A stretch of 32,264 bases of DNA from Octopus bimaculoides (Eukaryota). The stretch covers positions 18,629,314-18,661,577 of the forward strand of contig NC_068981.1 in the NCBI RefSeq assembly GCF_001194135.2, in the 5' to 3' direction. The position numbers were made by a program, and so were the translations under genes. Position 1 is the stretch's first letter. Every line of letters begins with the position of its first letter. The notes under the pieces were generated by a model. The model saw only the letters and a list, made by a program, of their open reading frames with translations. It did no database searches and was not told where the DNA came from. This document shows positions 2,213 to 30,825 of the stretch, piece by piece.

Positions 2213-3125
2213 NNNNNNNNNNNNNNNNNNNNNNNNNNNNNNNNNNNNNNNNNNNNNNNNNNNNNNNNNNNNNNNNNNNNNNNNNNNNNNNNNNNNNNNN
2301 NNNNNNNNNNNNNNNNNNNNNNNNNNNNNNNNNNNNNNNNNNNNNNNNNNNNNNNNNNNNNNNNNNNNNNNNNNNNNNNNNNNNNNNNNNNNNNNNNNNN
2401 NNNNNNNNNNNNNNNNNNNNNNNNNNNNNNNNNNNNNNNNNNNNNNNNNNNNNNNNNNNNNNNNNNNNNNNNNNNNNNNNNNNNNNNNNNNNNNNNNNNN
2501 NNNNNNNNNNNNNNNNNNNNNNNNNNNNNNNNNNNNNNNNNNNNNNNNNNNNNNNNNNNNNNNNNNNNNNNNNNNNNNNNNNNNNNNNNNNNNNNNNNNN
2601 NNNNNNNNNNNNNNNNNNNNNNNNNNNNNNNNNNNNNNNNNNNNNNNNNNNNNNNNNNNNNNNNNNNNNNNNNNNNNNNNNNNNNNNNNNNNNNNNNNNN
2701 NNNNNNNNNNNNNNNNNNNNNNNNNNNNNNNNNNNNNNNNNNNNNNNNNNNNNNNNNNNNNNNNNNNNNNNNNNNNNNNNNNNNNNNNNNNNNNNNNNNN
2801 NNNNNNNNNNNNNNNNNNNNNNNNNNNNNNNNNNNNNNNNNNNNNNNNNNNNNNNNNNNNNNNNNNNNNNNNNNNNNNNNNNNNNNNNNNNNNNNNNNNN
2901 NNNNNNNNNNNNNNNNNNNNNNNNNNNNNNNNNNNNNNNNNNNNNNNNNNNNNNNNNNNNNNNNNNNNNNNNNNNNNNNNNNNNNNNNNNNNNNNNNNNN
3001 NNNNNNNNNNNNNNNNNNNNNNNNNNNNNNNNNNNNNNNNNNNNNNNNNNNNNNNNNNNNNNNNNNNNNNNNNNNNNNNNNNNNNNNNNNNNNNNNNNNN
3101 NNNNNNNNNNNNNNNNNNNNNNNNN

Positions 3126-3174
<49 letters not shown>

Positions 3175-4093
3175 CATTTACAATGAAGAAAATTGGTATT
3201 AAAATAGCAGAGATTCTAAATAAATTCGCTATTCAGACAGACATATGACTTTCTTTTTAACTTGATAGATTTCAAAAACAAGCTAAAACATCATACACAC
3301 ACACACGCGAACACACACGCGCACACACACACGCACACACACACACATACATACACACACATATAAACAAGCACACACACAAATAAGCAAATACACACAC
3401 ACATACATACATACACAATCTCTCTTTATGTATGTGTGCGCTTGTGTATGTGTGTGTGTGTGAGTTATATGGTTAGATATTGGAGACAAACATTGTATCA
3501 GTAGATATTAAAATAAATTCTTAATAAACTTGCTCCAGGCATTAATTAATATTTTGTGCGTTTTATACTTAGTCATCAGCGAAGAAAAAGAAGAAAAATG
3601 TACGAACGTCGTACATTGTATTCAAAGAAGCTGCTAAAGCTACATACATACATACATACATACATACATACATACATACATACACACACACATACATACA
3701 TACATGCATACATTCATGCATTTATATAGTTTATATAGTCTTATATATTTATATATATATATATGTGTGTGCGCGCGTGTGTGTGTGTGTGTGTGTGTGT
3801 ATGAAAACAGGAAATGTGATGTCTTAATTCTGTAGTCAGACGGAATGAAATGGGCCGCAAATATAAACGATTGGATTGTACTTATGATTTCCCTTGTGGT
3901 AAATAATTGATGATGACTACCATATCAGAGTGCTCAACTTCCGTTAATGAGTTTGGTAAATAACATTCCAGTTATATCACGTAAAGCACACATTGCTCTA
4001 AGTTTTAGGTATGCAAAAATGGTTTTCCGAGAGTGTTCAATATTGCCACAAGTGACCTGTAAGAACGGCTGTTCCTATATATAAGAGCAACAA

Positions 4094-6490: not shown

Positions 6491-6794
6491 NNNNNNNNNN
6501 NNNNNNNNNNNNNNNNNNNNNNNNNNNNNNNNNNNNNNNNNNNNNNNNNNNNNNNNNNNNNNNNNNNNNNNNNNNNNNNNNNNNNNNNNNNNNNNNNNNN
6601 NNNNNNNNNNNNNNNNNNNNNNNNNNNNNNNNNNNNNNNNNNNNNNNNNNNNNNNNNNNNNNNNNNNNNNNNNNNNNNNNNNNNNNNNNNNNNNNNNNNN
6701 NNNNNNNNNNNNNNNNNNNNNNNNNNNNNNNNNNNNNNNNNNNNNNNNNNNNNNNNNNNNNNNNNNNATATATATATGCATATGTGCGCACAGG

Positions 6795-7270: not shown

Positions 7271-8360
7271 NNNNNNNNNNNNNNNNNNNNNNNNNNNNNN
7301 NNNNNNNNNNNNNNNNNNNNNNNNNNNNNNNNNNNNNNNNNNNNNNNNNNNNNNNNNNNNNNNNNNNNNNNNNNNNNNNNNNNNNNNNNNNNNNNNNNNN
7401 NNNNNNNNNNNNNNNNNNNNNNNNNNNNNNNNNNNNNNNNNNNNNNNNNNNNNNNNNNNNNNNNNNNNNNNNNNNNNNNNNNNNNNNNNNNNNNNNNNNN
7501 NNNNNNNNNNNNNNNNNNNNNNNNNNNNNNNNNNNNNNNNNNNNNNNNNNNNNNNNNNNNNNNNNNNNNNNNNNNNNNNNNNNNNNNNNNNNNNNNNNNN
7601 NNNNNNNNNNNNNNNNNNNNNNNNNNNNNNNNNNNNNNNNNNNNNNNNNNNNNNNNNNNNNNNNNNNNNNNNNNNNNNNNNNNNNNNNNNNNNNNNNNNN
7701 NNNNNNNNNNNNNNNNNNNNNNNNNNNNNNNNNNNNNNNNNNNNNNNNNNNNNNNNNNNNNNNNNNNNNNNNNNNNNNNNNNNNNNNNNNNNNNNNNNNN
7801 NNNNNNNNNNNNNNNNNNNNNNNNNNNNNNNNNNNNNNNNNNNNNNNNNNNNNNNNNNNNNNNNNNNNNNNNNNNNNNNNNNNNNNNNNNNNNNNNNNNN
7901 NNNNNNNNNNNNNNNNNNNNNNNNNNNNNNNNNNNNNNNNNNNNNNNNNNNNNNNNNNNNNNNNNNNNNNNNNNNNNNNNNNNNNNNNNNNNNNNNNNNN
8001 NNNNNNTATATATATTTGTATGAAATAGCAGTAATTATAACTGTATAGAACATGGAGACTTGTTCATTCTCAAAATTTATTTTCTTCTATTTTACAATTT
8101 TATCCAGCATATTTTTATGGTCATTATGACCTACACGTGTTTCTACTACACGAATTGCGGCCATTTGCAAATGCAACCTGGAACAATTTTCGGTACGGCT
8201 TCTTCAGGATCTGTCCACTTGGCAAGGAATTTACAGCGTGAATGACAGCTATTAGTAGTCATAGATGTTAAATACTAATCGATGCGCTTTGCCATAACCT
8301 GGACCATAACTGAGAGCCACTACGGTATCCGCTCAGGTGATATATCCCTCCACACTCACA

Positions 8361-8516: not shown

Positions 8517-8633
8517 ATTAGTTCAAGAAGAGCAATTTGAACTTTTTGGAGGGTCCAAAAAGTTAGATTTCTTATAAAGATTCTTAATATCAAAATAGTA
8601 ACTTGCCATTGCAAATATTTAAAATATTTAAAA

Positions 8634-9132
8634 TCCTATATAAACCCAACTAACAGTTACAAAATGGAGAAGAGAAAATATTAAAAGTTTTTATAAATTC
8701 TTAATCCGTATGATCGTTTCGAACGATAATACTGACATGTAAAAAAACATGCAAAAAATTAAATTAATTATAATAATAATTAATATAATAATTAGGTTAA
8801 ATTAATTTAATTAGGTATCACCATTCTCTTCAGTGGAAAAAATTAATAAAACATCAAAAAATGTATTAGCAAAAGAATATTACAATAAGACTACAGAGAG
8901 TCTGTGTCGGATAAAGTTGATCGGATATTCATAACAAGAATGTGAAATTGGAAAAATGAAACATAGGAACATGTTAATGTAGTGTTGAGTCTATCTGTGT
9001 AATATAATTTTTTCCACGTTTTCTTACATGTCAGTATTATCATTCGAAACGATCGTATGGATTGAAATTTTATAAAAACTTTTAACATCTTCTCTTATCC
9101 ATTTTTTAACTGTTAGTTGGGTTTATATAGGA
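8634..9132. repeat. MITE-like foldback with 132-bp inverted arms
   Basis: 8634-8765 versus the reverse complement of 9001-9132: about 14 mismatches, outer 26 bp perfect, 235-bp AT-rich spacer. No clear TSD. Confidence 0.9.
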
Positions 9133-9168
9133 CTTTATCCTATAATACTCATAACTGGGTTCGGCTGC

Positions 9169-9211
9169 TCTATATTGATAAGGGGCAAACACCCTGAAAC
9201 TAGTCTGTAGA
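9169..9211 (+). ncRNA. Minimal type I hammerhead-like motif, U3-A8 core variant
   Basis: Stem I TCTATA/TGTAGA (6 bp, one G.U); core TTGATAA 9175-9181; stem II GGGG/CCCT; GAAAC-TA-GTC with palindrome ACTAGT. Confidence 0.7.
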
Positions 9212-9427: not shown

Positions 9428-9482
<55 letters not shown>

Positions 9483-9940: not shown

Positions 9941-10024
9941 NNNNNNNNNNNNNNNNNNNNNNNNNNNNNNNNNNNNNNNNNNNNNNNNNNNNNNNNNNNN
10001 NNNNNNNNNNNNNNNNNNNNNNNN

Positions 10025-10702: not shown

Positions 10703-12084
10703 ACTGAACTTAACTGAACTCTCCTCTGGAGTAATTGTAACGGGTGTAGATCATCAGAAGTTGATAGGAAGTTGATACCTAATTACATATGCATATACAA
10801 ACATAAATCTATACGAATGTATATAAGTGTGTGTATGGACATATGTATGCATCATATGTATGTATATATATATATATATATGTGTGTGTGTATGTATCAT
10901 ACATATATACATACATACATGTTTACATGCTTACATATTGGCTTACTATTGTACATATATTTTATTGTAAGACATTTATTTATGAAGATATATGATGATA
11001 ACTGTCCGCAACGTTGATGCCTCTGGTATTAGACTTGCTCTCAAGTAAATAGTTATTCTTTTAATCGTTCGAATCAAAGAAATATTTTTTCATTGAAGGT
11101 AACTAGCAATACTTCATAGAAGCTTCGTTTCATCAGTCAAGAAGATTGCCTTGCTACACGTAACATGGCTAGACGACCTAATAATAACACACAACAACGG
11201 CAACAGCAGCAGTAGCAAGCAGCAGCAACGACGAACGAAAATATATACTGAGCAGAAATAAAAAGAAAAAAAAAACATGTGTGTGTGTTAGTGTACGTGT
11301 CTGAAGTACATGCATACATACAATATATGTACGTATATGTGTTTATATATATGTGTATGTGTGTGTGCATATATATATATATATANNNNNNNNNNNNNNN
11401 NNNNNNNNNNNNNNNNNNNNNNNNNNNNNNNNNNNNNNNNNNNNNNNNNNNNNNNNNNNNNNNNNNNNNNNNNNNNNNNNNNNNNNNNNNNNNNNNNNNN
11501 NNNNNNNNNNNNNNNNNNNNNNNNNNNNNNNNNNNNNNNNNNNNNNNNNNNNNNNNNNNNNNNNNNNNNNNNNNNNNNNNNNNNNNNNNNNNNNNNNNNN
11601 NNNNNNNNNNNNNNNNNNNNNNNNNNNNNNNNNNNNNNNNNNNNNNNNNNNNNNNNNNNNNNNNNNNNNNNNNNNNNNNNNNNNNNNNNNNNNNNNNNNN
11701 NNNNNNNNNNNNNNNNNNNNNNNNNNNNNNNNNNNNNNNNNNNNNNNNNNNNNNNNNNNNNNNNNNNNNNNNNNNNNNNNNNNNNNNNNNNNNNNNNNNN
11801 NNNNNNNNNNNNNNNNNNNNNNNNNNNNNNNNNNNNNNNNNNNNNNNNNNNNNNNNNNNNNNNNNNNNNNNNNNNNNNNNNNNNNNNNNNNNNNNNNNNN
11901 NNNNNNNNNNNNNNNNNNNNNNNNNNNNNNNNNNNNNNNNNNNNNNNNNNNNNNNNNNNNNNNNNNNNNNNNNNNNNNNNNNNNNNNNNNNNNNNNNNNN
12001 NNNNNNNNNNNNNNNNNNNNNNNNNNNNNNNNNNNNNNNNNNNNNNNNNNNNNNNNNNNNNNNNNNNNNNNNNNNNNNNNNNNN

Positions 12085-12137: not shown

Positions 12138-12487
12138 TGGTTGTGTGGTAAGAAGCTTGCTTACCAACCACATGGTCTTCTACTCTAGCCTCGAGCCAAC
12201 CAGAACTTTGTGAGTGGATTTGGTAGACGGAAACTGAAAGAAGTCCGTCGAATATGTACATATATATGTATATGTTTGTGTGTCTGTGTTTGCATCTCCC
12301 CTCCGCCACCACCATTGCTTGAAACCGATGTTGGTGTGTTTACGTCCCCATAAACTAGTGGCTCGGCTTAAGAGACCGATGGAATAAGTACTTGGCTTAC
12401 CAAGAATAGGTCCTGGGGTCAATTTGTTCGACTAAAGGTGGTGCTCTAGCATGGCCGCAGTCAAATGACTGAAACAAATAAAAGAAT
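12138..12487 (+). mobile_element. SINE family A copy with B-box region deleted
   Basis: TGGTTGTGTGGTAAG...CCACATGGT joined directly to CTTCTAC. Standard body and tail follow. Confidence 0.9.
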
Positions 12488-12706
12488 CTTTGCTACTCTA
12501 GGCACAAGAACCCGAAAATTTTGGGGAAGTGGGGGCGCAGTCGATTAGATCGACCACAGTACGCAACTGGTACTTAATTTATCGACCCCGAAAGGATGAA
12601 AAGCAAAGTCGACCTCGGCAAAATTTGAACTCAGAACTTAAAGACAGAAGAAATACCGCAAAGCATTTCGCTCGGAGTGCTAACGTCTCTGCCAGTTCAC
12701 CGCCTT
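12488..12706 (-). mobile_element. SINE family B (variant tail) inserted in the tail of a family A SINE, 17-bp TSD
   Basis: The reverse strand has the family B head and core. Flanks are GAAACAAATAAAAGAAT (12471-12487) and GAAATAAATAAAAGAAT (12707-12723). Confidence 0.88.
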
Positions 12707-12769: not shown

Positions 12770-13009
12770 TGTATACACATGCACTAAATACGTATATGCA
12801 TGGCGAGGATTATCAAGCGAATGCGTATCGGTATGTTAAGTATAAATTCCTCAAACCGATTTTCAAGAATTATAACGAAACCAATAACGCAATTACAGAC
12901 GAGGAAATGGTTGGTATAGTTACGAATACATTGGATTGTTTGAGAAGTTCACTTGCCATGAGAGATGTTGCACCCGACATTTCGAACTTTGTTCTACGTC
13001 GTCAGAAAG

Positions 13010-13058
<49 letters not shown>

Positions 13059-13134
13059 TAGATAGAGAGAGCGAAGGAGGGGAGAGAGTGATAGAGAGGA
13101 AGGGAGAGAGATAGAGATAGATAGATAGATAGAA

Positions 13135-13189
<55 letters not shown>

Positions 13190-13395
13190 CAGAGAGACAG
13201 ACAGACAGAATGGCATAGCTAAATAGTGTGCTGCTTGTCAAAGCTTTTGAGTTTGCCGTGCCTCGCCAACTTGAACCCTGCAGAGCTTTATAAAGCAGAC
13301 GAAATAGTGTCGCCCTATAAAAGTACCACCTGGGATAGACCTACCACAGTCCCCTATCTACGCAGCTGGGGATAGAGAGACAGATAGATAGACAG

Positions 13396-13464
<69 letters not shown>

Positions 13465-13696: not shown

Positions 13697-13867
13697 AATT
13701 GCAGCGTGGAAGGTGTTTAGAAGCCATTTATAAACATTTTGTCAGTGAACAGATCGCGGTCTCAAAGCGACGAAAATATTTTGGCAAATTAAATTTAAAT
13801 GTTGAAGTGAATCTAACGGTTTTGGTGTGTTTTTAAATGGCTTACAAACACCTTCAACGCTGCAATT
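13697..13867. repeat. Hairpin element with 40-bp inverted arms and 91-nt loop
   Basis: 13697-13736 versus the reverse complement of 13828-13867: 36 of 40 match. Confidence 0.92.
13738..13788 (+). ncRNA. Minimal type I hammerhead-like motif, G3-C8 core variant
   Basis: Stem I TTTGTCA/TGGCAAA (7 bp); core GTGAACA 13745-13751; stem II TCGC/GCGA plus G-C closure with one bulged A; GAAA 13772-13775; palindrome AATATT 13775-13780; H17=U. Confidence 0.72.
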
Positions 13868-16025: not shown

Positions 16026-17386
16026 AACAAGTATAAACCAGATGTACTCTCTCGATTTAGAAGATTTCATTCAATTATAAGCTTTGCACACACATGTATG
16101 TACGCGTAGGCATGTGTTTGCGTGTTTATGCAAAGATGTCAAATTTTCCTGAACTAAGGGCTTTTTTCTCGTGAGAGCTATAATCTAAATATATGTATGT
16201 ATATATATATATATATATATATATACGCACACCCACACACACGAAATAACCCACGTGCGATCCACAAAGCAAATCGCACGCATATACACACACACGTACA
16301 CACACATATATATACACATACACACACGTACACAAAAATACAGGCAAACACTGCGAGGAAATCACACCCACACAATACAAACACACACGCACACACACAT
16401 ACTCAAAAACTGCCTGCTTACCTTCCACTGACCATTGTCCACAGGCACTCCCTAACTATTCCTGCTACTAATTCCTTCCACCACGTCACACAAACACACA
16501 CACACACAAACACACACATAGACACTAACAGATAAACAACCAAACCACGCACACACACACACACACATACGCACACACACACACACACACACACATACGC
16601 ACACACACGTTCTGTTATTACACACACACTTGCAGACCCTCGCGCACGCACACATATTCACCTCCCTTTTTCACTCTCCTGTCTTAGAAAGANNNNNNNN
16701 NNNNNNNNNNNNNNNNNNNNNNNNNNNNNNNNNNNNNNNNNNNNNNNNNNNNNNNNNNNNNNNNNNNNNNNNNNNNNNNNNNNNNNNNNNNNNNNNNNNN
16801 NNNNNNNNNNNNNNNNNNNNNNNNNNNNNNNNNNNNNNNNNNNNNNNNNNNNNNNNNNNNNNNNNNNNNNNNNNNNNNNNNNNNNNNNNNNNNNNNNNNN
16901 NNNNNNNNNNNNNNNNNNNNNNNNNNNNNNNNNNNNNNNNNNNNNNNNNNNNNNNNNNNNNNNNNNNNNNNNNNNNNNNNNNNNNNNNNNNNNNNNNNNN
17001 NNNNNNNNNNNNNNNNNNNNNNNNNNNNNNNNNNNNNNNNNNNNNNNNNNNNNNNNNNNNNNNNNNNNNNNNNNNNNNNNNNNNNNNNNNNNNNNNNNNN
17101 NNNNNNNNNNNNNNNNNNNNNNNNNNNNNNNNNNNNNNNNNNNNNNNNNNNNNNNNNNNNNNNNNNNNNNNNNNNNNNNNNNNNNNNNNNNNNNNNNNNN
17201 NNNNNNNNNNNNNNNNNNNNNNNNNNNNNNNNNNNNNNNNNNNNNNNNNNNNNNNNNNNNNNNNNNNNNNNNNNNNNNNNNNNNNNNNNNNNNNNNNNNN
17301 NNNNNNNNNNNNNNNNNNNNNNNNNNNNNNNNNNNNNNNNNNNNNNNNNNNNNNNNNNNNNNNNNNNNNNNNNNNNNNNNNNNNNN

Positions 17387-17720
17387 GGTTCAGTCCCACT
17401 GCGTGGCACCTTCTACTATAGCCTCGAGCCGACCAAAGCCTTGAGAGTGGATTTGGTAGACAGAAACTAAAAGAAGCCCGTCATATATATGTATATGTAT
17501 ATATATGTGTGTTTGTGTGTCTGTGTTTGACTCCCAGCATCCCTTGAAAACCGATGCTGGTGTGCTTACGTCCCCGTAACATAGCGGTTCAGCAAAAGAA
17601 CCCGATAGAATAAGTACTAGGTTTACAAAGAATAAGTCCTGGGGTCGATTTGCTCGACTAAAGTCGGTGCTCCAGCATAGCCGCAGTCAAATAGCTGAAA
17701 CAAGTAAAAGAGTAAAAGAG
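17387..17720 (+). mobile_element. SINE family A copy, 5' end in gap, short internal deletion
   Basis: GGTTCAGTCCCACTGCGTGGCACCTTCTACTATAGCC...AAGTAAAAGAGTAAAAGAG. Confidence 0.9.
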
Positions 17721-18070: not shown

Positions 18071-18470
18071 AGGAGGAGGAGAAGAAGAAGAAGAAGAAAT
18101 AGAAGAAGAAGAAGACGAAGAAGACGAAGAAGAAGAAGAGCAACAACAACAACAACAACAACATNNNNNNNNNNNNNNNNNNNNNNNNNNNNNNNNNNNN
18201 NNNNNNNNNNNNNNNNNNNNNNNNNNNNNNNNNNNNNNNNNNNNNNNNNNNNNNNNNNNNNNNNNNNNNNNNNNNNNNNNNNNNNNNNNNNNNNNNNNNN
18301 NNNNNNNNNNNNNNNNNNNNNNNNNNNNNNNNNNNNNNNNNNNNNNNNNNNNNNNNNNNNNNNNNNNNNNNNNNNNNNNNNNNNNNNNNNNNNNNNNNNN
18401 NNNNNNNNNNNNNNNNNNAAGACGAAGAAGACGAAGAAGAAGAAGAGCAACAACAACAACAACAACAACA
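18071..18470. repeat. (GGA/GAA/GAC)n(CAA)n microsatellite spanning an N gap
   Basis: Read directly. The same ~53-nt sequence lies on both sides of the gap. Confidence 0.95.
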
Positions 18471-18984: not shown

Positions 18985-20350
18985 AACTGTTTACGGTTTA
19001 GTCAAGTGGAAGGGATTGACACCAAAGACTTCTGAGATCGGTGAGATTAGTGCGGTTGATGTTCAGTTTAAACAACTGAAATTTGACAACTGCAGGAGAA
19101 GTAACATAGCAGATCGGGAGAGGAAAATTGAGAGGATAGGTGTTTTGAGAAGGAAAAAATACTGAGCGAAGTAGTCAATACGAATCATAAGGCGAGTAGA
19201 GACAACGTGAGTGACAAGAGGAAAGACAAGTGTATGGAGATTGATAGAATAATACAACTTGGGAAGCAACTGGTTAGCTCAGACGAACGGAGGGAGGGGT
19301 GCATTGTAATTATTCACTGGAAAAGCCGAGTGAGAACATAATGTTTTTGTGGCTCGAGATCGGAGTAGGTTGGAAAGTAACTCCTTGCTAATCAATCGGG
19401 TGGCAATTTTTTTTGTTATCGTCTAGGTTGTTCGTTCGAGTTGCAAAAATACCGTCCCATATGTGGGATCAGCGTTTCAGTTTGGGTCTCATTTAAGCTT
19501 TGTCGAGAGTTAGCAGTAATTGGGGGTTGAAGTATTTCCTGGCTCTAAAGAGGACAGCTAGTCTTTCGGGTCAAAGTTTTGGTACGTTATAAATGTGATA
19601 TCAACAGGTGAGATTATCAGTGATTAATGAGCCTAGCATCAATAGAAACTTTCCGGGTTATAGTTAGATGTCTTCTATGATTAGGGAGGTAGGGCATAAT
19701 GTTGTTTCCTTGATATGCACAATGATTGTCTTTGTTTCATTGGAGACAGAATTGACTTGTTCCGATTGGTGACGGTTTTCGAGATCCTTGTTCATGGAGA
19801 CAAGGTTTAGTGCGAGTGTGTAAGTTGCACGTGGATCACACTTATACGAAGAAGGTTAGGGAAGAGTGAACGGCAGTATCAACTGTATAGGAGTGGGCGT
19901 TATTAGGAATGACAGCAAGTAGATCTTTAAGCTGTGAGATTGGTGACGGTTTTCGAGATCCTTGTTCATGGAGACAAGGTTTAGTGCGAGTGTGTAAGTT
20001 GCACGTGGATCACACTTATACGAAGAAGGTTAGGGAAGAGTGAACGGCAGTATCAACTGTATAGGAGTGGGCGTTATTAGGAATGACAGCAAGTAGATCT
20101 TTAAGCTGCGAGATGGGAGATTATACTTTGTGAAAGTTTGGCGTTGGAGGTGAGAGATAAATCAAGGGATTTGGAATGTCGTGTCGTTCAGAAATACGCT
20201 TTGCAAGGGCAACTAGTTGTTATACAGAACTAATGATAGCAAAATAAATCGCTCCCTTACACGTAGTCACACGAAAGTGTGAGAGAAGTCTGAGCCAAGA
20301 GGAAAGGTGGATACTGAGATCGTCAAGAAAGATAATTTCAGTGGCACCGA
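18985..20350 (-). pseudogene. 5'-truncated LINE (CR1/Jockey-like) reverse transcriptase and C-terminal relic
   Basis: Minus strand: HSYTVDT (YADD decayed), SMNKDLEN, ETKTIIV, RLAVLFRARKYFNPQLLLTLDKA*MRPKL, SHIWDG, IRIDYFAQYFF. Confidence 0.85.
19764..20111. repeat. 174-bp near-perfect tandem duplication
   Basis: 19764-19937 versus 19938-20111 with one mismatch (19935/20109). GAT microhomology at the junctions. Confidence 0.97.
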
Positions 20351-21479: not shown

Positions 21480-21888
21480 TTACTTCATCGACCACAACTG
21501 CTTACCTTCCCAAGCTAACCTGTTATATCTATCGACTTTTCTTTCTTCCTTATCGCATACCTTGTTGTCAGCTGGGCACGCTATATCTATGATCCAGCAT
21601 AGTTTGTTTTCTTTCTCAATTAAGACTATGTCTGGCTTCCTATTCTCAATCTCATGGTCGCACTGAATCATAAAATCCCATAGGATCTTTGCATTTCTAT
21701 TTTCGACAATACCTTCAAGTTTGTGGTCGTACCAATTTTCTTCTCTGTCAAGTCCACACTTGTTGCAAAGTGTCCAATGGACAAGCCTAGCGTCCATTGT
21801 GATATCTCTTATATTCCTTCTGGGCTAGTGGCGTACACTGACTGGTAATATGCCATACAGTATCACCGTTTTGTCATCAGATGCTGCA
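21480..21888 (-). pseudogene. R4/Dong-like non-LTR retrotransposon C-terminal fragment (CCHC knuckle plus restriction-like endonuclease)
   Basis: C..**...TVWHITSQCTPLAQKEYKR, frameshift, then ARLVHW...ILWDFMIQCDHEIENRKPDIVLIEKENKLCWIIDIACP...LWSMK (PD...D motif). Confidence 0.9.
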
Positions 21889-21913
21889 CTTATTCTGATT
21901 CTATTATTATAGT

Positions 21914-22077
21914 GGCATTTCGTCCGTCTTTACCTCCTGAGTTCAAATTCCACCGAAGTTTATTTTGCCTTTCATCTTTTCAGGGTCGATAAAATAAATA
22001 TCAGTTGAACACTGGGGTCGAAGTAATCGACCTATCTCCTCCCTGGAAATTGCTGGTTTCGTACCAAAATTTGAAAT
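21914..22077 (+). mobile_element. 5'-truncated SINE family B variant
   Basis: GAGTTCAAATTCC, TTGCCTTTCATC...GGGTCGATAAA, CACTGGGGTCGA. Confidence 0.8.
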
Positions 22078-23619: not shown

Positions 23620-23870
23620 CTCTTTTATTCTTTTATTCGTTTCAGTCATTTTGACTGCGGCCATGCTGGAGTACCGCCTTTAGTCGAGAAAATCGACCCC
23701 AGGACTTATTCTTTGTAAGCCTAATACTTCTTCTATCGGTCTCTTATGCTGAACCGGTCTCTTATGTAAACACACCAGCATCGATGTCAAGCGATGTTGG
23801 GGTGGGGACACACACAAACATATACACACACACATACATATATACATATATACGACGGGCTTCTTTCAGT
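23620..23870 (-). mobile_element. 5'-truncated SINE family A
   Basis: TTTCAGTCATTTTGACTGCGGCCATGCTGGAG...ACGACGGGCTTCTTTCAGT. Confidence 0.9.
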
Positions 23871-23911
23871 TAATTAGCATAATAGCATAGCCTGGAAAAA
23901 AACATGGATTA

Positions 23912-24840: not shown

Positions 24841-25497
24841 ACGTGGCACCTTGAGCAAATATCGTCTACTATAGCCTCGGGCCAAGGAAAACCATGTGAG
24901 TGGATTTGGTAGACAGAAATTGAGAGAAGCTCACGAAGGCGGCGAGCTGGCAGAAACGTTAGCACGCCGGGCAAAATGCTTGGCGGTATTCCGTCTACCG
25001 TTGCATTCTGAGTTCAAATTCCGCCGAGGTCGACTTTGCCTTTCATTCTTTCGAGGTCGATAAATTAAGTACCAGTTAAGCACTGGGGTCGATGTAATCG
25101 ACTTAATTCGTTTGTCTGTCCTTGTTTGTCCCCTCCATGTTTAGCCCCTTGTGGGCAATAAAGAAATTGAGAGAAGCTCCTCGTATATATTTATATATAT
25201 ATGTGCGCGCGCACCCGCGTGTCTGTCTGTCTGTATGTGTGTGTGTGTGTGTGCGCGCGCGCGCGTATCTATGTGTATATGTGTCTGTGTTTGTTCCCCC
25301 GCCATCGCTTGTTGACAACTGATGCTGATGTGCTTATGTCTCCGTAACTTAACGGTTCGGTGAATGAGACCGATAGAATATGTACTAGGCTTACGAAAAA
25401 TAGGTCCTGCGGTCGATTTCTTCGACTAAAATCCTTTAAGATGGTGCTCCAGCATGGCCGCCGTCAAATAGCTGAAACACGTAAAAGGTTAAAAGAA
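24841..25497 (+). mobile_element. 5'-truncated SINE family A interrupted by a family B copy
   Basis: The family A body is collinear on both sides of the 24933-25161 insert. Confidence 0.9.
24933..25161 (+). mobile_element. Full SINE family B with perfect 18-bp flanking duplication
   Basis: AGAAATTGAGAGAAGCTC at 24915-24932 and 25162-25179. Confidence 0.93.
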
Positions 25498-25511: not shown

Positions 25512-25752
25512 AAGGCGGTGAACTGGCAGAGACGTTAGCACGCTGGGCGAAATGCTTAGCGGTATTTCGTCTGCCGCTACGTTCTGAGTTCAAATTCCAC
25601 CGAGGTCGACTTTGCCTTTTATCCTTTCGGGGTCGATTAAATAAGTACCAGTTACGCACTGGGGCCGATATAATCGACTTAATCCGTTTGTCTGTCCTTG
25701 TTTGTTTGTCCCCTCTGTGTGTAGTCCCTTGTGGGCAGTAAAGAAATAAGAA
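25512..25752 (+). mobile_element. Full SINE family B
   Basis: Head, core and AAAGAAATAAGAA tail as at 1919-2156. Confidence 0.92.
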
Positions 25753-25894
25753 TACGTCTTAACAACAGAATTTGATTCAGAGCCCGGTTGAGAACCACTG
25801 CTTTCGAGTAAAGCGATAGAAGAATACAGAACATAACATCAATGAATAAACGGCAGAAGTGCAGTAGTTACACTCGTATTTTGAACAAGTTTTA

Positions 25895-26284
25895 GTCATT
25901 TGACTGTGGCCATGCTGGAGCACTACCTTTAGTCGAGCAAATCGACCCCAGGACTTATTCTTTGTAAGCCAAGTACTTATTCTACCAGTCTCTTTTGTCG
26001 AACCGCTAAGTTACGGGGACGTAAACACACCAGCATCGGTTGTCAAGCGATGTTGGGGGGACAAACACAGACACACGAACATACACACACGCTCACACAT
26101 ATACATATATATATATACATACGACGGACTTCTTTCAGTTTCCGTCTACCAAATCCACTCACAAGGCTTTGGTCGGCCCGAGGCTATAGTAGAAGACACA
26201 TGCCCAAGATGCCACGCAGTGGGACTGAACCCGGAACCGCGTGGTTCGTAAGCAAGCTACTTACCACACAGCCACTCCTACGTC
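25895..26284 (-). mobile_element. Near full-length SINE family A with perfect 18-bp TSD
   Basis: TATTTTGAACAAGTTTTA at 25877-25894 and 26285-26302. A- and B-box-like motifs are intact. Confidence 0.95.
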
Positions 26285-27042
26285 TATTTTGAACAAGTTT
26301 TACTGACAAAAATTTTTCGTAATCCTTTCTGCTCATGAAACGCCATGATCATTATAATACAATGATATTCACTTTCTAATCTGTGAACTAATGAAATACA
26401 CTCAGTGCTATTGCATTTGTTACAACAAACTAAACTGTTGCTCTGGTGCCATGTTTCATCTCATGAGACTTATAATAATGTAACTCCACAAATTTCCCCA
26501 CATTTAATTCTCTTCATTAACCTATCCCAGTCCTCAACGGGGAAAAATCACTTTTATCATATTCTGCTGCCAAGGAGTCTTTGGTGCATTTCTGTGTCCA
26601 CAAGTTCACCTAGTGAGATAAAATGCAGTTTGTGCTTCACTTTTGTTTTGTTGGTTTTTGATTTTTTTTTTTGGTATCTTTATATTTTCATATTTTGCAA
26701 TCAGGGTTGACTAGACAGATTACAAAAATTAGAAGCAAATATAAAACAAACGAATAAATGAACGAAAAAAAAAAGAAAGAAAACGAGCAGCCACAATAAA
26801 CAAGGGGGAGGGGAATGAAGGATGGAATAATTATCGTACTTGAAGGAAACAATCCTGCTTGAAGGAAAGAAGAATAACGAACTTCTTGCAAACTGATCGA
26901 CNNNNNNNNNNNNNNNNNNNNNNNNNNNNNNNNNNNNNNNNNNNNNNNNNNNNNNNNNNNNNNNNNNNNNNNNNNNNNNNNNNNNNNNNNNNNNNNNNNN
27001 NCCAGTCTTATTACTAATACTGTGCTCACACATAACGTATCT

Positions 27043-29150: not shown

Positions 29151-29887
29151 CAAAAACATAATGAAAGTAATTGCATGGCTCCTATTCTAGTGTCATTAAT
29201 TAATTAATCTAGTCTAGCAGTTGAGTACCGTTTGGCATGTTCTTTGGATGTTAACCCCTCTAGCACTCTCTGTATATGATCTGGGAGTGTCCATATAACC
29301 CCCCTGTCCATATCCTCCCCCTGCTGCCGTTAAGTTGATTACTGGAGCTTCAGCTATCATGACTAGACCTGAGAAGAATACTGGATTGCTTTCCCGGTGC
29401 CTTCCCCATGGAAACGGATTATAACTCAGAATCNNNNNNNNNNNNNNNNNNNNNNNNNNNNNNNNNNNNNNNNNNNNNNNNNNNNNNNNNNNNNNNNNNN
29501 NNNNNNNNNNNNNNNNNNNNNNNNNNNNNNNNNNNNNNNNNNNNNNNNNNNNNNNNNNNNNNNNNNNNNNNNNNNNNNNNNNNNNNNNNNNNNNNNNNNN
29601 NNNNNNNNNNNNNNNNNNNNNNNNNNNNNNNNNNNNNNNNNNNNNNNNNNNNNNNNNNNNNNNNNNNNNNNNNNNNNNNNNNNNNNNNNNNNNNNNNNNN
29701 NNNNNNNNNNNNNNNNNNNNNNNNNNNNNNNNNNNNNNNNNNNNNNNNNNNNNNNNNNNNNNNNNNNNNNNNNNNNNNNNNNNNNNNNNNNNNNNNNNNN
29801 NNNNNNNNNNNNNNNNNNNNNNNNNNNNNNNNNNNNNNNNNNNNNNNNNNNNNNNNNNNNNNNNNNNNNNNNNNNNNNNNNNNNNNN

Positions 29888-29945: not shown

Positions 29946-30825
29946 ATAGGGTTCAGTGAATAAACTGTCATCTAAATTACACAACAATGAAAATGACGCT
30001 GACATTACATTTTAACAGATATATTTACCAGACTTACAGAAAAATATCTTGAAATACTAAAGAGTAAATTTATTCAATAAAAGTGCCATTGGCCTCAACC
30101 TCAACCTCCAGACAACTTCAGAATTTTTTCCAACTTTTCTGGATGATCTTGTTTAAGTTGGTGAATGCTGCCATAATCCTTGCCTTGGGTTCTTCTTTGG
30201 TGTTACAAGGAGTTTTGTTGGTCTCTCGTTCAACTGCAGCCCACACATAATAATCAAAAGGTTTGCAGTTTTGGGAGATAGGTGACCAGATGTTAGGGGT
30301 GATGTGGTCGCAGAAATTGTCTGACAGCCATGACTGGGTTCTCCTGCTTGTGTGGCATGTTGCAGAGTCCTGTTGTCAGACATAGGGTTTTTCAGCAGCC
30401 ACCCTGTTGACCCAGGGTAGCACTACCCTCCTCCAGGCACTTGATGTAGGCCTCCGTGTTGAGTGTGAAGCCGTGTGGGAAGATGAATGGCGGCATAACG
30501 TCGCTATCACTAATGATAACACCAAACACCATGATGTTGACTGGATGTTTGCTTTTTATCACTCTCGGTACATGTCCTCATATTGCACTGTCTTCAGATT
30601 GACATCCAAATACTCTGAAATGTTCGTATTGAAACTTCCGGCGCGAGCGTCAAGCATGTCGTTACCAAATTTCTGGCAGAATGAATTGCGTCATGGTGTT
30701 GTTTTTCTTACAGATGGTGCCCAACTGGCCCTACTATACTGTGTAGTCGACAAAACCAAAACCAAACAATGCACATGCATGAAATTGAAAATATAAAATG
30801 GTGGTAATTTACCCAACGCACCCAG
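29946..30825 (-). mobile_element. Internally deleted DD37D (maT-type) Tc1/mariner element
   Basis: Minus strand: IMVFGVI, NTEAYIKCLEEVVLPWV, QQDSA...37 aa...PFDYYVW, VEANGTFIE* (stop 30070-30072). The N-terminal HTH stub is joined by a deletion near 30575. Imperfect GGGT-starting TIRs, TA at 30826. Confidence 0.88.

Follow-up and report, generated by a model that had tools for sequence, protein, structure and literature searches.

The stretch between positions 13697 and 13867 of the window, by which we mean the whole 32,264-nt piece of Octopus bimaculoides DNA that was analysed, raises the question of whether a hammerhead-like string with a deviating catalytic core, placed inside a long inverted repeat, is a genuine motif of the ribozyme type and, if so, what kind of element left it there. 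The window is a draft scaffold containing nine N runs, abundant microsatellites and several interspersed-repeat families. Of the assembly gaps that these runs represent (2213-3125, 6491-6767, 7271-8006, 9941-10024, 11386-12084, 16693-17386, 18165-18418, 26902-27001 and 29434-29887), most are directly bordered by microsatellites, and nearby repeat structure, including a tandem or inverted arrangement like that of Penelope-like elements (PLE), may be incompletely assembled.

The 171-bp unit is delimited by an inverted repeat whose left arm (13697-13736) and right arm (13828-13867), each 40 nt long and separated by 91 nt, are 90% complementary. When a 20-mer of the arm was searched with up to 3 mismatches, 2 occurrences were found in the window compared to 0.00 expected from shuffled sequences. 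The outermost 11 nt are identical between both arms, while 4 of the 40 positions are mismatched (G.A, A.C, G.A and U.U), none of them as G.U. A self-BLAST of the window returned, for the 171-bp unit, no other copy and no direct or tandem repeat. Some 240 bp separate the unit from microsatellite tracts upstream of it, which fall within 13004-13460. No unambiguous target-site duplication was detected around 13697-13867; such a duplication is not discernible because the palindromic AATT present at both ends is indistinguishable from an extension of the repeat itself.

One nucleotide past the end of the left arm, a 51-nt sequence on the forward strand (13738-13788) begins which has the layout of a type-I hammerhead with the core GUGAACA, the core being surrounded by three helices. 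Helix I has 7 bp, one of them G.U, formed between the 5' strand TTTGTCA (13738-13744) and the 3' strand TGGCAAA (13782-13788). The 5' half of the catalytic core (13745-13751) reads G3 U4 G5 A6 A7 C8 A9 as compared to the consensus CUGANGA, matching it at U4, G5, A6 and A9. In detail, G13745 and C13750 occupy core positions 3 and 8, and their identities are swapped relative to the consensus C3-G8 with Watson-Crick pairing kept. Helix II (13752-13771) comprises 5 bp and a bulge: it starts with the usually conserved G10.1-C11.1 pair (G13752-C13771), is followed by the bulged A13753 and the TCGC/GCGA stem, and is capped by the 9-nt loop 2, GGTCTCAAA (13758-13766). One T is missing opposite A13753; if it were present, the stem would form 6 perfect base pairs (GAUCGC/GCGAUC). 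Behind G12 A13 A14 (GAA, 13772-13774) lies helix III (13775-13780), in which A15.1 (13775) pairs with U16.1 (13780) and closes the palindromic tetraloop AUAU. As it consists of 1 bp plus a palindromic tetraloop, this helix would be stable only as a dimer, in which it would amount to six A-U pairs. H17 is U13781, and the predicted scissile bond is located between 13781 and 13782.

Thus U4, G5, A6, A9, G12, A13, A14, the A15.1-U16.1 pair and an H17 that is not G, i.e. the hammerhead consensus positions at 13746-13748, 13751, 13772-13775, 13780 and 13781, are all present. A spacer of 39 nt without notable structure (13789-13827; z about 0 to +1) connects the motif with the right arm, which ends 86 nt downstream of the predicted cut. 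An earlier note on this DNA had described a 40-bp hairpin, a 7-bp stem I starting 1 nt after the left arm, the core GTGAACA, a stem II with one bulge, GAAA and the stem III palindrome AATATT, and our analysis confirmed each of these elements at its place.

Folding predictions separate the contribution of the arms from that of the motif. The 171-nt unit shows strong self-pairing (z = -7.4), whereas the 91-nt interior between the arms has no excess stability (z = +1.07) and its 3' part a z of about 0; the stability of the unit therefore stems entirely from the inverted repeat. For the isolated 51-nt motif the hammerhead fold was calculated at -7.4 kcal/mol against a minimum free energy (MFE) of -9.2 kcal/mol, and within the 171-nt unit a hammerhead-compatible fold reached -60.0 as compared to -61.7 kcal/mol, i.e. 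within 1.7 kcal/mol of the minimum. According to these predictions, the hammerhead secondary structure is energetically accessible. The earlier note had also proposed a role for the hairpin as RNA, which did not find support: as no mismatch between the arms is a G.U wobble, there is no sign of selection on an RNA stem, and the interior contributes no stability of its own.

To identify hammerhead-like motifs in the window, both strands were scanned with a descriptor of minimal type-I hammerheads. In detail, a match had to show the core N-UGA-N-N-A and 4 bp or more in each of helices I and II, with no more than a single bulge or a single extra nucleotide allowed in helix II. Helix II had to be followed by GAAA, 0-6 nt of palindromic insert, U and a nucleotide other than G. 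Its tolerances (one bulge, a loop of up to 20 nt) were partly fixed post hoc, after the motif had been seen. Exactly 2 matches were obtained, namely the motif at 13738-13788 and another one at 9169-9211. In a looser scan just two more weak matches appeared, both of them with a 3-bp helix I and non-pairing 3/8 positions.

The expected number of matches was taken from a 200-Mb null sequence generated by a third-order Markov model trained on the window. This sequence contained 101 matches over all sixteen 3/8 combinations, 28 with a Watson-Crick combination and 3 with G3-C8, which corresponds to 0.028, 0.0079 and 0.00084 matches, respectively, per window-equivalent of 56,106 non-N bases. If helix I must have 6 bp or more and positions 3/8 must be Watson-Crick paired, 0.0011 matches are expected and 2 were observed. 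The reversed sequence of the real window gave 0 matches, as did each of 23 composition-matched decoy descriptors, in which the UGA and GAAA letters were permuted, on the real window.

The other match (9169-9211) is a second minimal type-I hammerhead-like motif on the same strand, 4.5 kb upstream of the first and unrelated to it in sequence. It reads TCTATA TTGATAA GGGG CAAACA CCCT GAAA CTAG T C TGTAGA, with a helix I of 6 bp, a helix II of 4 bp (G10.1.U11.1), a palindromic CUAG tetraloop, C as H17 and a U3-A8 core. This combination is a natural covariant of the hammerhead core (PMC3088659; Cercyon PLE, PMC4209133). A 138-bp inverted repeat (8629-8766 / 9000-9137, 89%) ends 32 nt upstream of this motif and a (TA)n microsatellite (9432-9481) follows about 220 nt downstream, so that both motifs of the window share a context of inverted repeat and microsatellite.

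As a positive control, other invertebrate-like contigs totalling 122 kb were scanned with the descriptor, which found a single motif, present in two duplicated loci (L010 and L011). In L011, on a contig of ENA assembly ERZ25066843, it occupies 3528-3568 of the minus strand, and it is identical in L010. Its sequence, TTTGA CTGATGA A GATCTA CGT TAGATC GAAA AT T T TCAAA, is that of a textbook PLE-type minimal hammerhead with the canonical CUGAUGA core and a palindromic helix III; it has an extra A after A9 and a 6-bp helix II that begins with GAUC (GAUCUA/UAGAUC), which may be compared with the GAUCGC/GCGAUC of 13752-13771 when the bulge is mended. An (ATT)n tract lies 30 nt downstream, and reverse-transcriptase ORFs downstream of the motif gave a zf-RVT match and no GIY-YIG match. 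Neither this canonical match nor the one at 9169-9211 had been used for tuning the descriptor. The three hammerhead motifs yielded no structural alignment with MAFFT.

These results bear on the possibility that the inverted repeat is a MITE, a foldback or another palindrome at the DNA level and that the hammerhead-like string inside it is a coincidence. Just one copy of the unit was found, its core departs from the consensus at two invariant positions, helix II is bulged and helix III consists of A-U only. The motif was picked by eye, with windows screened beforehand uncounted, and the palindromic AATT at both ends could mask a 4-bp target-site duplication. The hammerhead models of Rfam gave no match to 13738-13788 at gathering or permissive thresholds, nor at E <= 10 in a 71-nt search. 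They missed the 9169-9211 motif as well, but this negative result is uninformative, because the fully canonical minimal hammerhead of L011, used as a control, was also missed.

However, a chance origin is at odds with an expectation of 0.0008 G3-C8 matches per window (0.008 for any Watson-Crick 3/8 combination), with the absence of matches from the decoys and the reversed sequence, and with an independent second hammerhead-like motif in the same window. Moreover, the G10.1-C11.1 pair and a near-perfect 6-bp helix II go beyond what the descriptor demanded, and the deviation at positions 3/8 is precisely compensatory. The sequence at 13738-13788 is thus supported as a motif of the hammerhead type that is statistically non-random and in which the G3-C8 swap keeps Watson-Crick pairing; given the decoys and controls, a purely accidental origin of the motif is unlikely, and we consider the coincidental reading of the whole unit unlikely as well.

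Which family the motif resembles can be judged from its architecture. In metazoan type-I hammerheads helix III is reduced to 1-2 bp with a small palindromic loop, which forces a dimeric action (Cervera & de la Pena 2014, PMC4209133), and a dimeric mode of action is assumed for minimal hammerheads of PLEs and other metazoan elements with such a helix III (PMC4209133, PMC7229834). The earlier note had given this type of stem III as typical of PLE minimal hammerheads, in agreement with these reports. In PLE minimal hammerheads, furthermore, the G10.1-C11.1 pair is highly conserved, helix II is enlarged and contains an unpaired nucleotide, positions 15.2-16.2 are palindromic and the sequence varies extremely; a variant from D. 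virilis has a bulge in the middle of the helix. Most of them stand alone, derived from truncated PLEs, and pairs of them, spaced by 100-700 bp on opposite strands, are sometimes seen (PMC4209133).

The motif at 13738-13788 matches this architecture in its type-I layout, its one-pair helix III with palindromic loop, its G10.1-C11.1 pair, its enlarged helix II with an unpaired nucleotide and the covariation of core positions 3 and 8, and it is likewise a solo motif with inverted repeats and microsatellites nearby. It differs in several respects. The core pair is G3-C8, whereas C3-G8 and U3-A8 are the only pairs found in the literature examined; the unpaired A13753 follows position 10.1, while theirs precedes it; helix I, with 7 bp, exceeds the 4-5 bp that Schistosoma families usually have; and no PLE gene or pLTR adjoins 13738-13788.

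The explanation that we prefer, at about even confidence, is that a PLE, or a short element mobilised by PLE machinery, left the 171-bp unit behind as a dead fragment whose hammerhead has a naturally swapped core pair. PLE insertions are heavily 5'-truncated and favour microsatellites, and an adjacent inverted 5'-truncated copy is frequent in them and gives rise to inverted repeats (PMC8557442). In addition, the purified PLE protein of Anolis (PAc) nicks and extends both DNA strands (PMC11167929). Two 5'-truncated PLE 3' ends joined head to head would, by analogy with these reports (PMC8557442, PMC11167929), explain the inverted repeat without any role for it as RNA. In detail, a minimal type-I hammerhead of the PLE type would have been located in the source RNA at a distance of about 50-130 nt from the 3' end. 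Upon integration, two cDNA copies, both of them 5'-truncated, would have ended up head to head, one of 40 nt in inverted orientation (13697-13736) and one of 131 nt (13737-13867). The outer ends of both arms would then represent the 3' terminus of the element, and the 40-bp hairpin stem would be only a by-product.

A basis for comparison is the PAc (Poseidon) PLE of Anolis carolinensis, in which the hammerhead cuts at +26 and reverse transcription starts internally at +111-118 (PMC11167929), which places the 3' ends of insertions 85-92 nt past the cut. The 86 nt between the predicted cut and the end of the right arm fall within this range, although this is an analogy with a single example, and in L011 the motif is just 30 nt away from its microsatellite. 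The ability of the PAc protein to extend both strands could yield head-to-head copies. The PAc hammerhead also provides the precedent for a G3-C8 core, since its engineered C3G/G8C double mutant partly restores cleavage (PMC11167929); the statement of the earlier note that a swapped 3/8 pair can retain activity is consistent with this. There G3-C8 is a laboratory mutant, however, and not a natural sequence, and the PAc hammerhead overlaps the start of an ORF, whereas no ORF follows here.

Even under the PLE-fragment explanation the motif itself is probably an inactive relic, as judged from its sequence, because helix III is a single A-U pair, no second copy is nearby and no PLE reading frame lies downstream. 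The earlier note had expected cleavage as a dimer. With no tandem partner at the locus a dimeric helix III would not form, which again makes the motif probably inactive, and the sole other motif is 4.5 kb away and carries a helix III palindrome that is not complementary (CUAG versus AUAU), so that this expectation is not supported at the locus.

Searches for coding sequence and for relatives were negative within their scope. Pfam detected neither reverse transcriptase nor GIY-YIG downstream of the two motifs of the window, where the three forward frames were scanned, nor in ten larger ORFs. No homologue of either window element was present in six loci of 20 kb each from other ENA assemblies of invertebrate-like character, which were reached via a shared retroelement ORF with 74-80% nucleotide identity. 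With the arm 20-mer, 5 matches were obtained in JGI metagenome contigs, all of about 20-33 nt and attributable to chance. Six-frame ORF probes covering the unit, its unique flanks and the 9169-9211 region found nothing among 5.8 billion predicted proteins; this collection does not include the source genome (8 ORFs of the window were absent from it by exact look-up), so that the lack of matches there is a poor guide to copy number.

Relatives in the protein collection were found for one part of the window alone, a retroelement-derived ORF fragment of 105-114 aa on the minus strand (21480-21870), which has no Pfam match and shows 73-83% protein identity to ORFs in RVT_1-rich contigs of ENA ERZ25066843 and ERZ25066847. 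Another ORF fragment on the minus strand (30121-30375) has no Pfam match either; we take it to resemble the C-terminal part of a Tc1/mariner-type transposase. Among the non-coding repeats, a SINE-like interspersed repeat of about 300 bp is present in at least 6 copies (1-197, 12171-12487, 17387-17720, 23620-23871, 25265-25496 and 25889-26285), which are 72-89% identical and occur in both orientations. A second repeat family is found at 1922-2161, 12539-12706, 21910-22034, 24936-25167 and 25512-25758. Finally, 19764-20120 is a local tandem duplication, in which a stretch of 183 bp recurs 174 bp further on, its two occurrences (19764-19946 and 19938-20120) being 98% identical.

A retrozyme-like origin, as the earlier note had proposed, would make the unit a small non-autonomous and self-paired element whose transcript is cleaved by the hammerhead it carries and closed into a circle, the 40-bp stem forming part of a rod-like RNA. 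The length of 171 nt together with z = -7.4 resembles self-paired circular RNAs of 170-400 nt, and helix III is of the type found in the retrozyme hammerheads of amphibians (PMC7229834); a hammerhead-compatible fold at most 1.7 kcal/mol from the minimum also fits. Likewise, the non-LTR retrozymes and the satellite hammerheads of newt and axolotl share with the unit the type-I layout, the single-pair helix III with palindromic tetraloop, a size near 170 nt and a strong self-pairing (PMC7229834).

What defines metazoan retrozymes, however, is a tandem arrangement of units of about 170-400 bp that each contain a type-I hammerhead (PMC7229834), and the window contains neither a tandem repeat nor a second copy of the unit. 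The non-LTR retrozymes form tandem arrays with tertiary contacts between loop 1 and loop 2 and a canonical core, whereas the unit at 13697-13867 stands alone, its core pair is swapped and loops suited to tertiary contacts are not evident. A monomer with a helix III of 1 bp is moreover expected to cleave poorly, the stability of the unit comes from the inverted repeat with an interior of z = +1.07, and the mismatches of the hairpin are not of the wobble type. In addition, the hammerhead is whole and in the middle of the unit, whereas a monomer that had been cut and reverse-transcribed would have it split at its ends. We therefore regard a retrozyme-like origin as distinctly improbable.

The swapped pair itself might have arisen by decay of a canonical motif, the source having had C3-G8 and both substitutions having occurred after insertion, without any functional G3-C8 lineage. 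The arms differ at 4 of 40 positions, so that the insertion is old enough for substitutions, and helix II has an apparent deletion of 1 nt. This would nevertheless require two independent transversions on both of the paired positions, with complementarity restored and the other core consensus positions intact, for which we roughly estimate a probability of about 1e-4 per decaying copy. Natural U3-A8 cores (Perreault et al. 2011, PMC3088659; PMC4209133) are likewise a Watson-Crick-preserving change of C3-G8, but there a wobble intermediate is possible, whereas G3-C8 needs two transversions via non-pairing intermediates.

As both transversions fall exactly on the paired positions and the rest of the core is intact, random decay is improbable, and an origin of the swap before insertion is favoured, though not proven. 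Because pairing is preserved, the G3-C8 swap was most likely already present in the source lineage of the proposed PLE-type fragment, and we rate the decay of a canonical source as no more than a slim prospect. In targeted searches of the accessible literature, G3-C8 was not encountered as the core of any natural hammerhead.

That the locus encodes a hairpin RNA or a microRNA-like transcript, with the 40-bp stem as small-RNA precursor, is very improbable, since a 91-nt loop is atypical of animal microRNA precursors and the generic matches to MIR8562 (24.9 bits, gathering threshold 211) and MIR9481 (23.1 bits, gathering threshold 130) were weak; the reading was discarded on account of these scores, which fall far short of the gathering thresholds and do not differ between the strands, as would be seen with any inverted repeat.

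Beyond a dead PLE-type fragment at this locus, the genome might harbour a living or recently active lineage of the PLE or retrozyme type with a naturally inverted G3-C8 pair, which we consider a minor possibility. If true, this would be the first natural transversion covariant of the hammerhead C3-G8 pair, the nucleotide providing the general-acid 2'-OH would not need to be a guanosine in vivo, and searches based on CUGANGA would systematically miss a class of self-cleaving RNAs. Even if confirmed, the finding would be an incremental point in a well-studied family. Confirmation by other copies would nonetheless establish G3-C8, beside U3-A8, as the second natural covariant of the only Watson-Crick pair of the core; annotation pipelines for hammerheads and PLEs that are keyed to CUGANGA would then need a relaxed core, and there would be in-vivo support for the view that pairing between positions 3 and 8 matters more than the identity of the bases.
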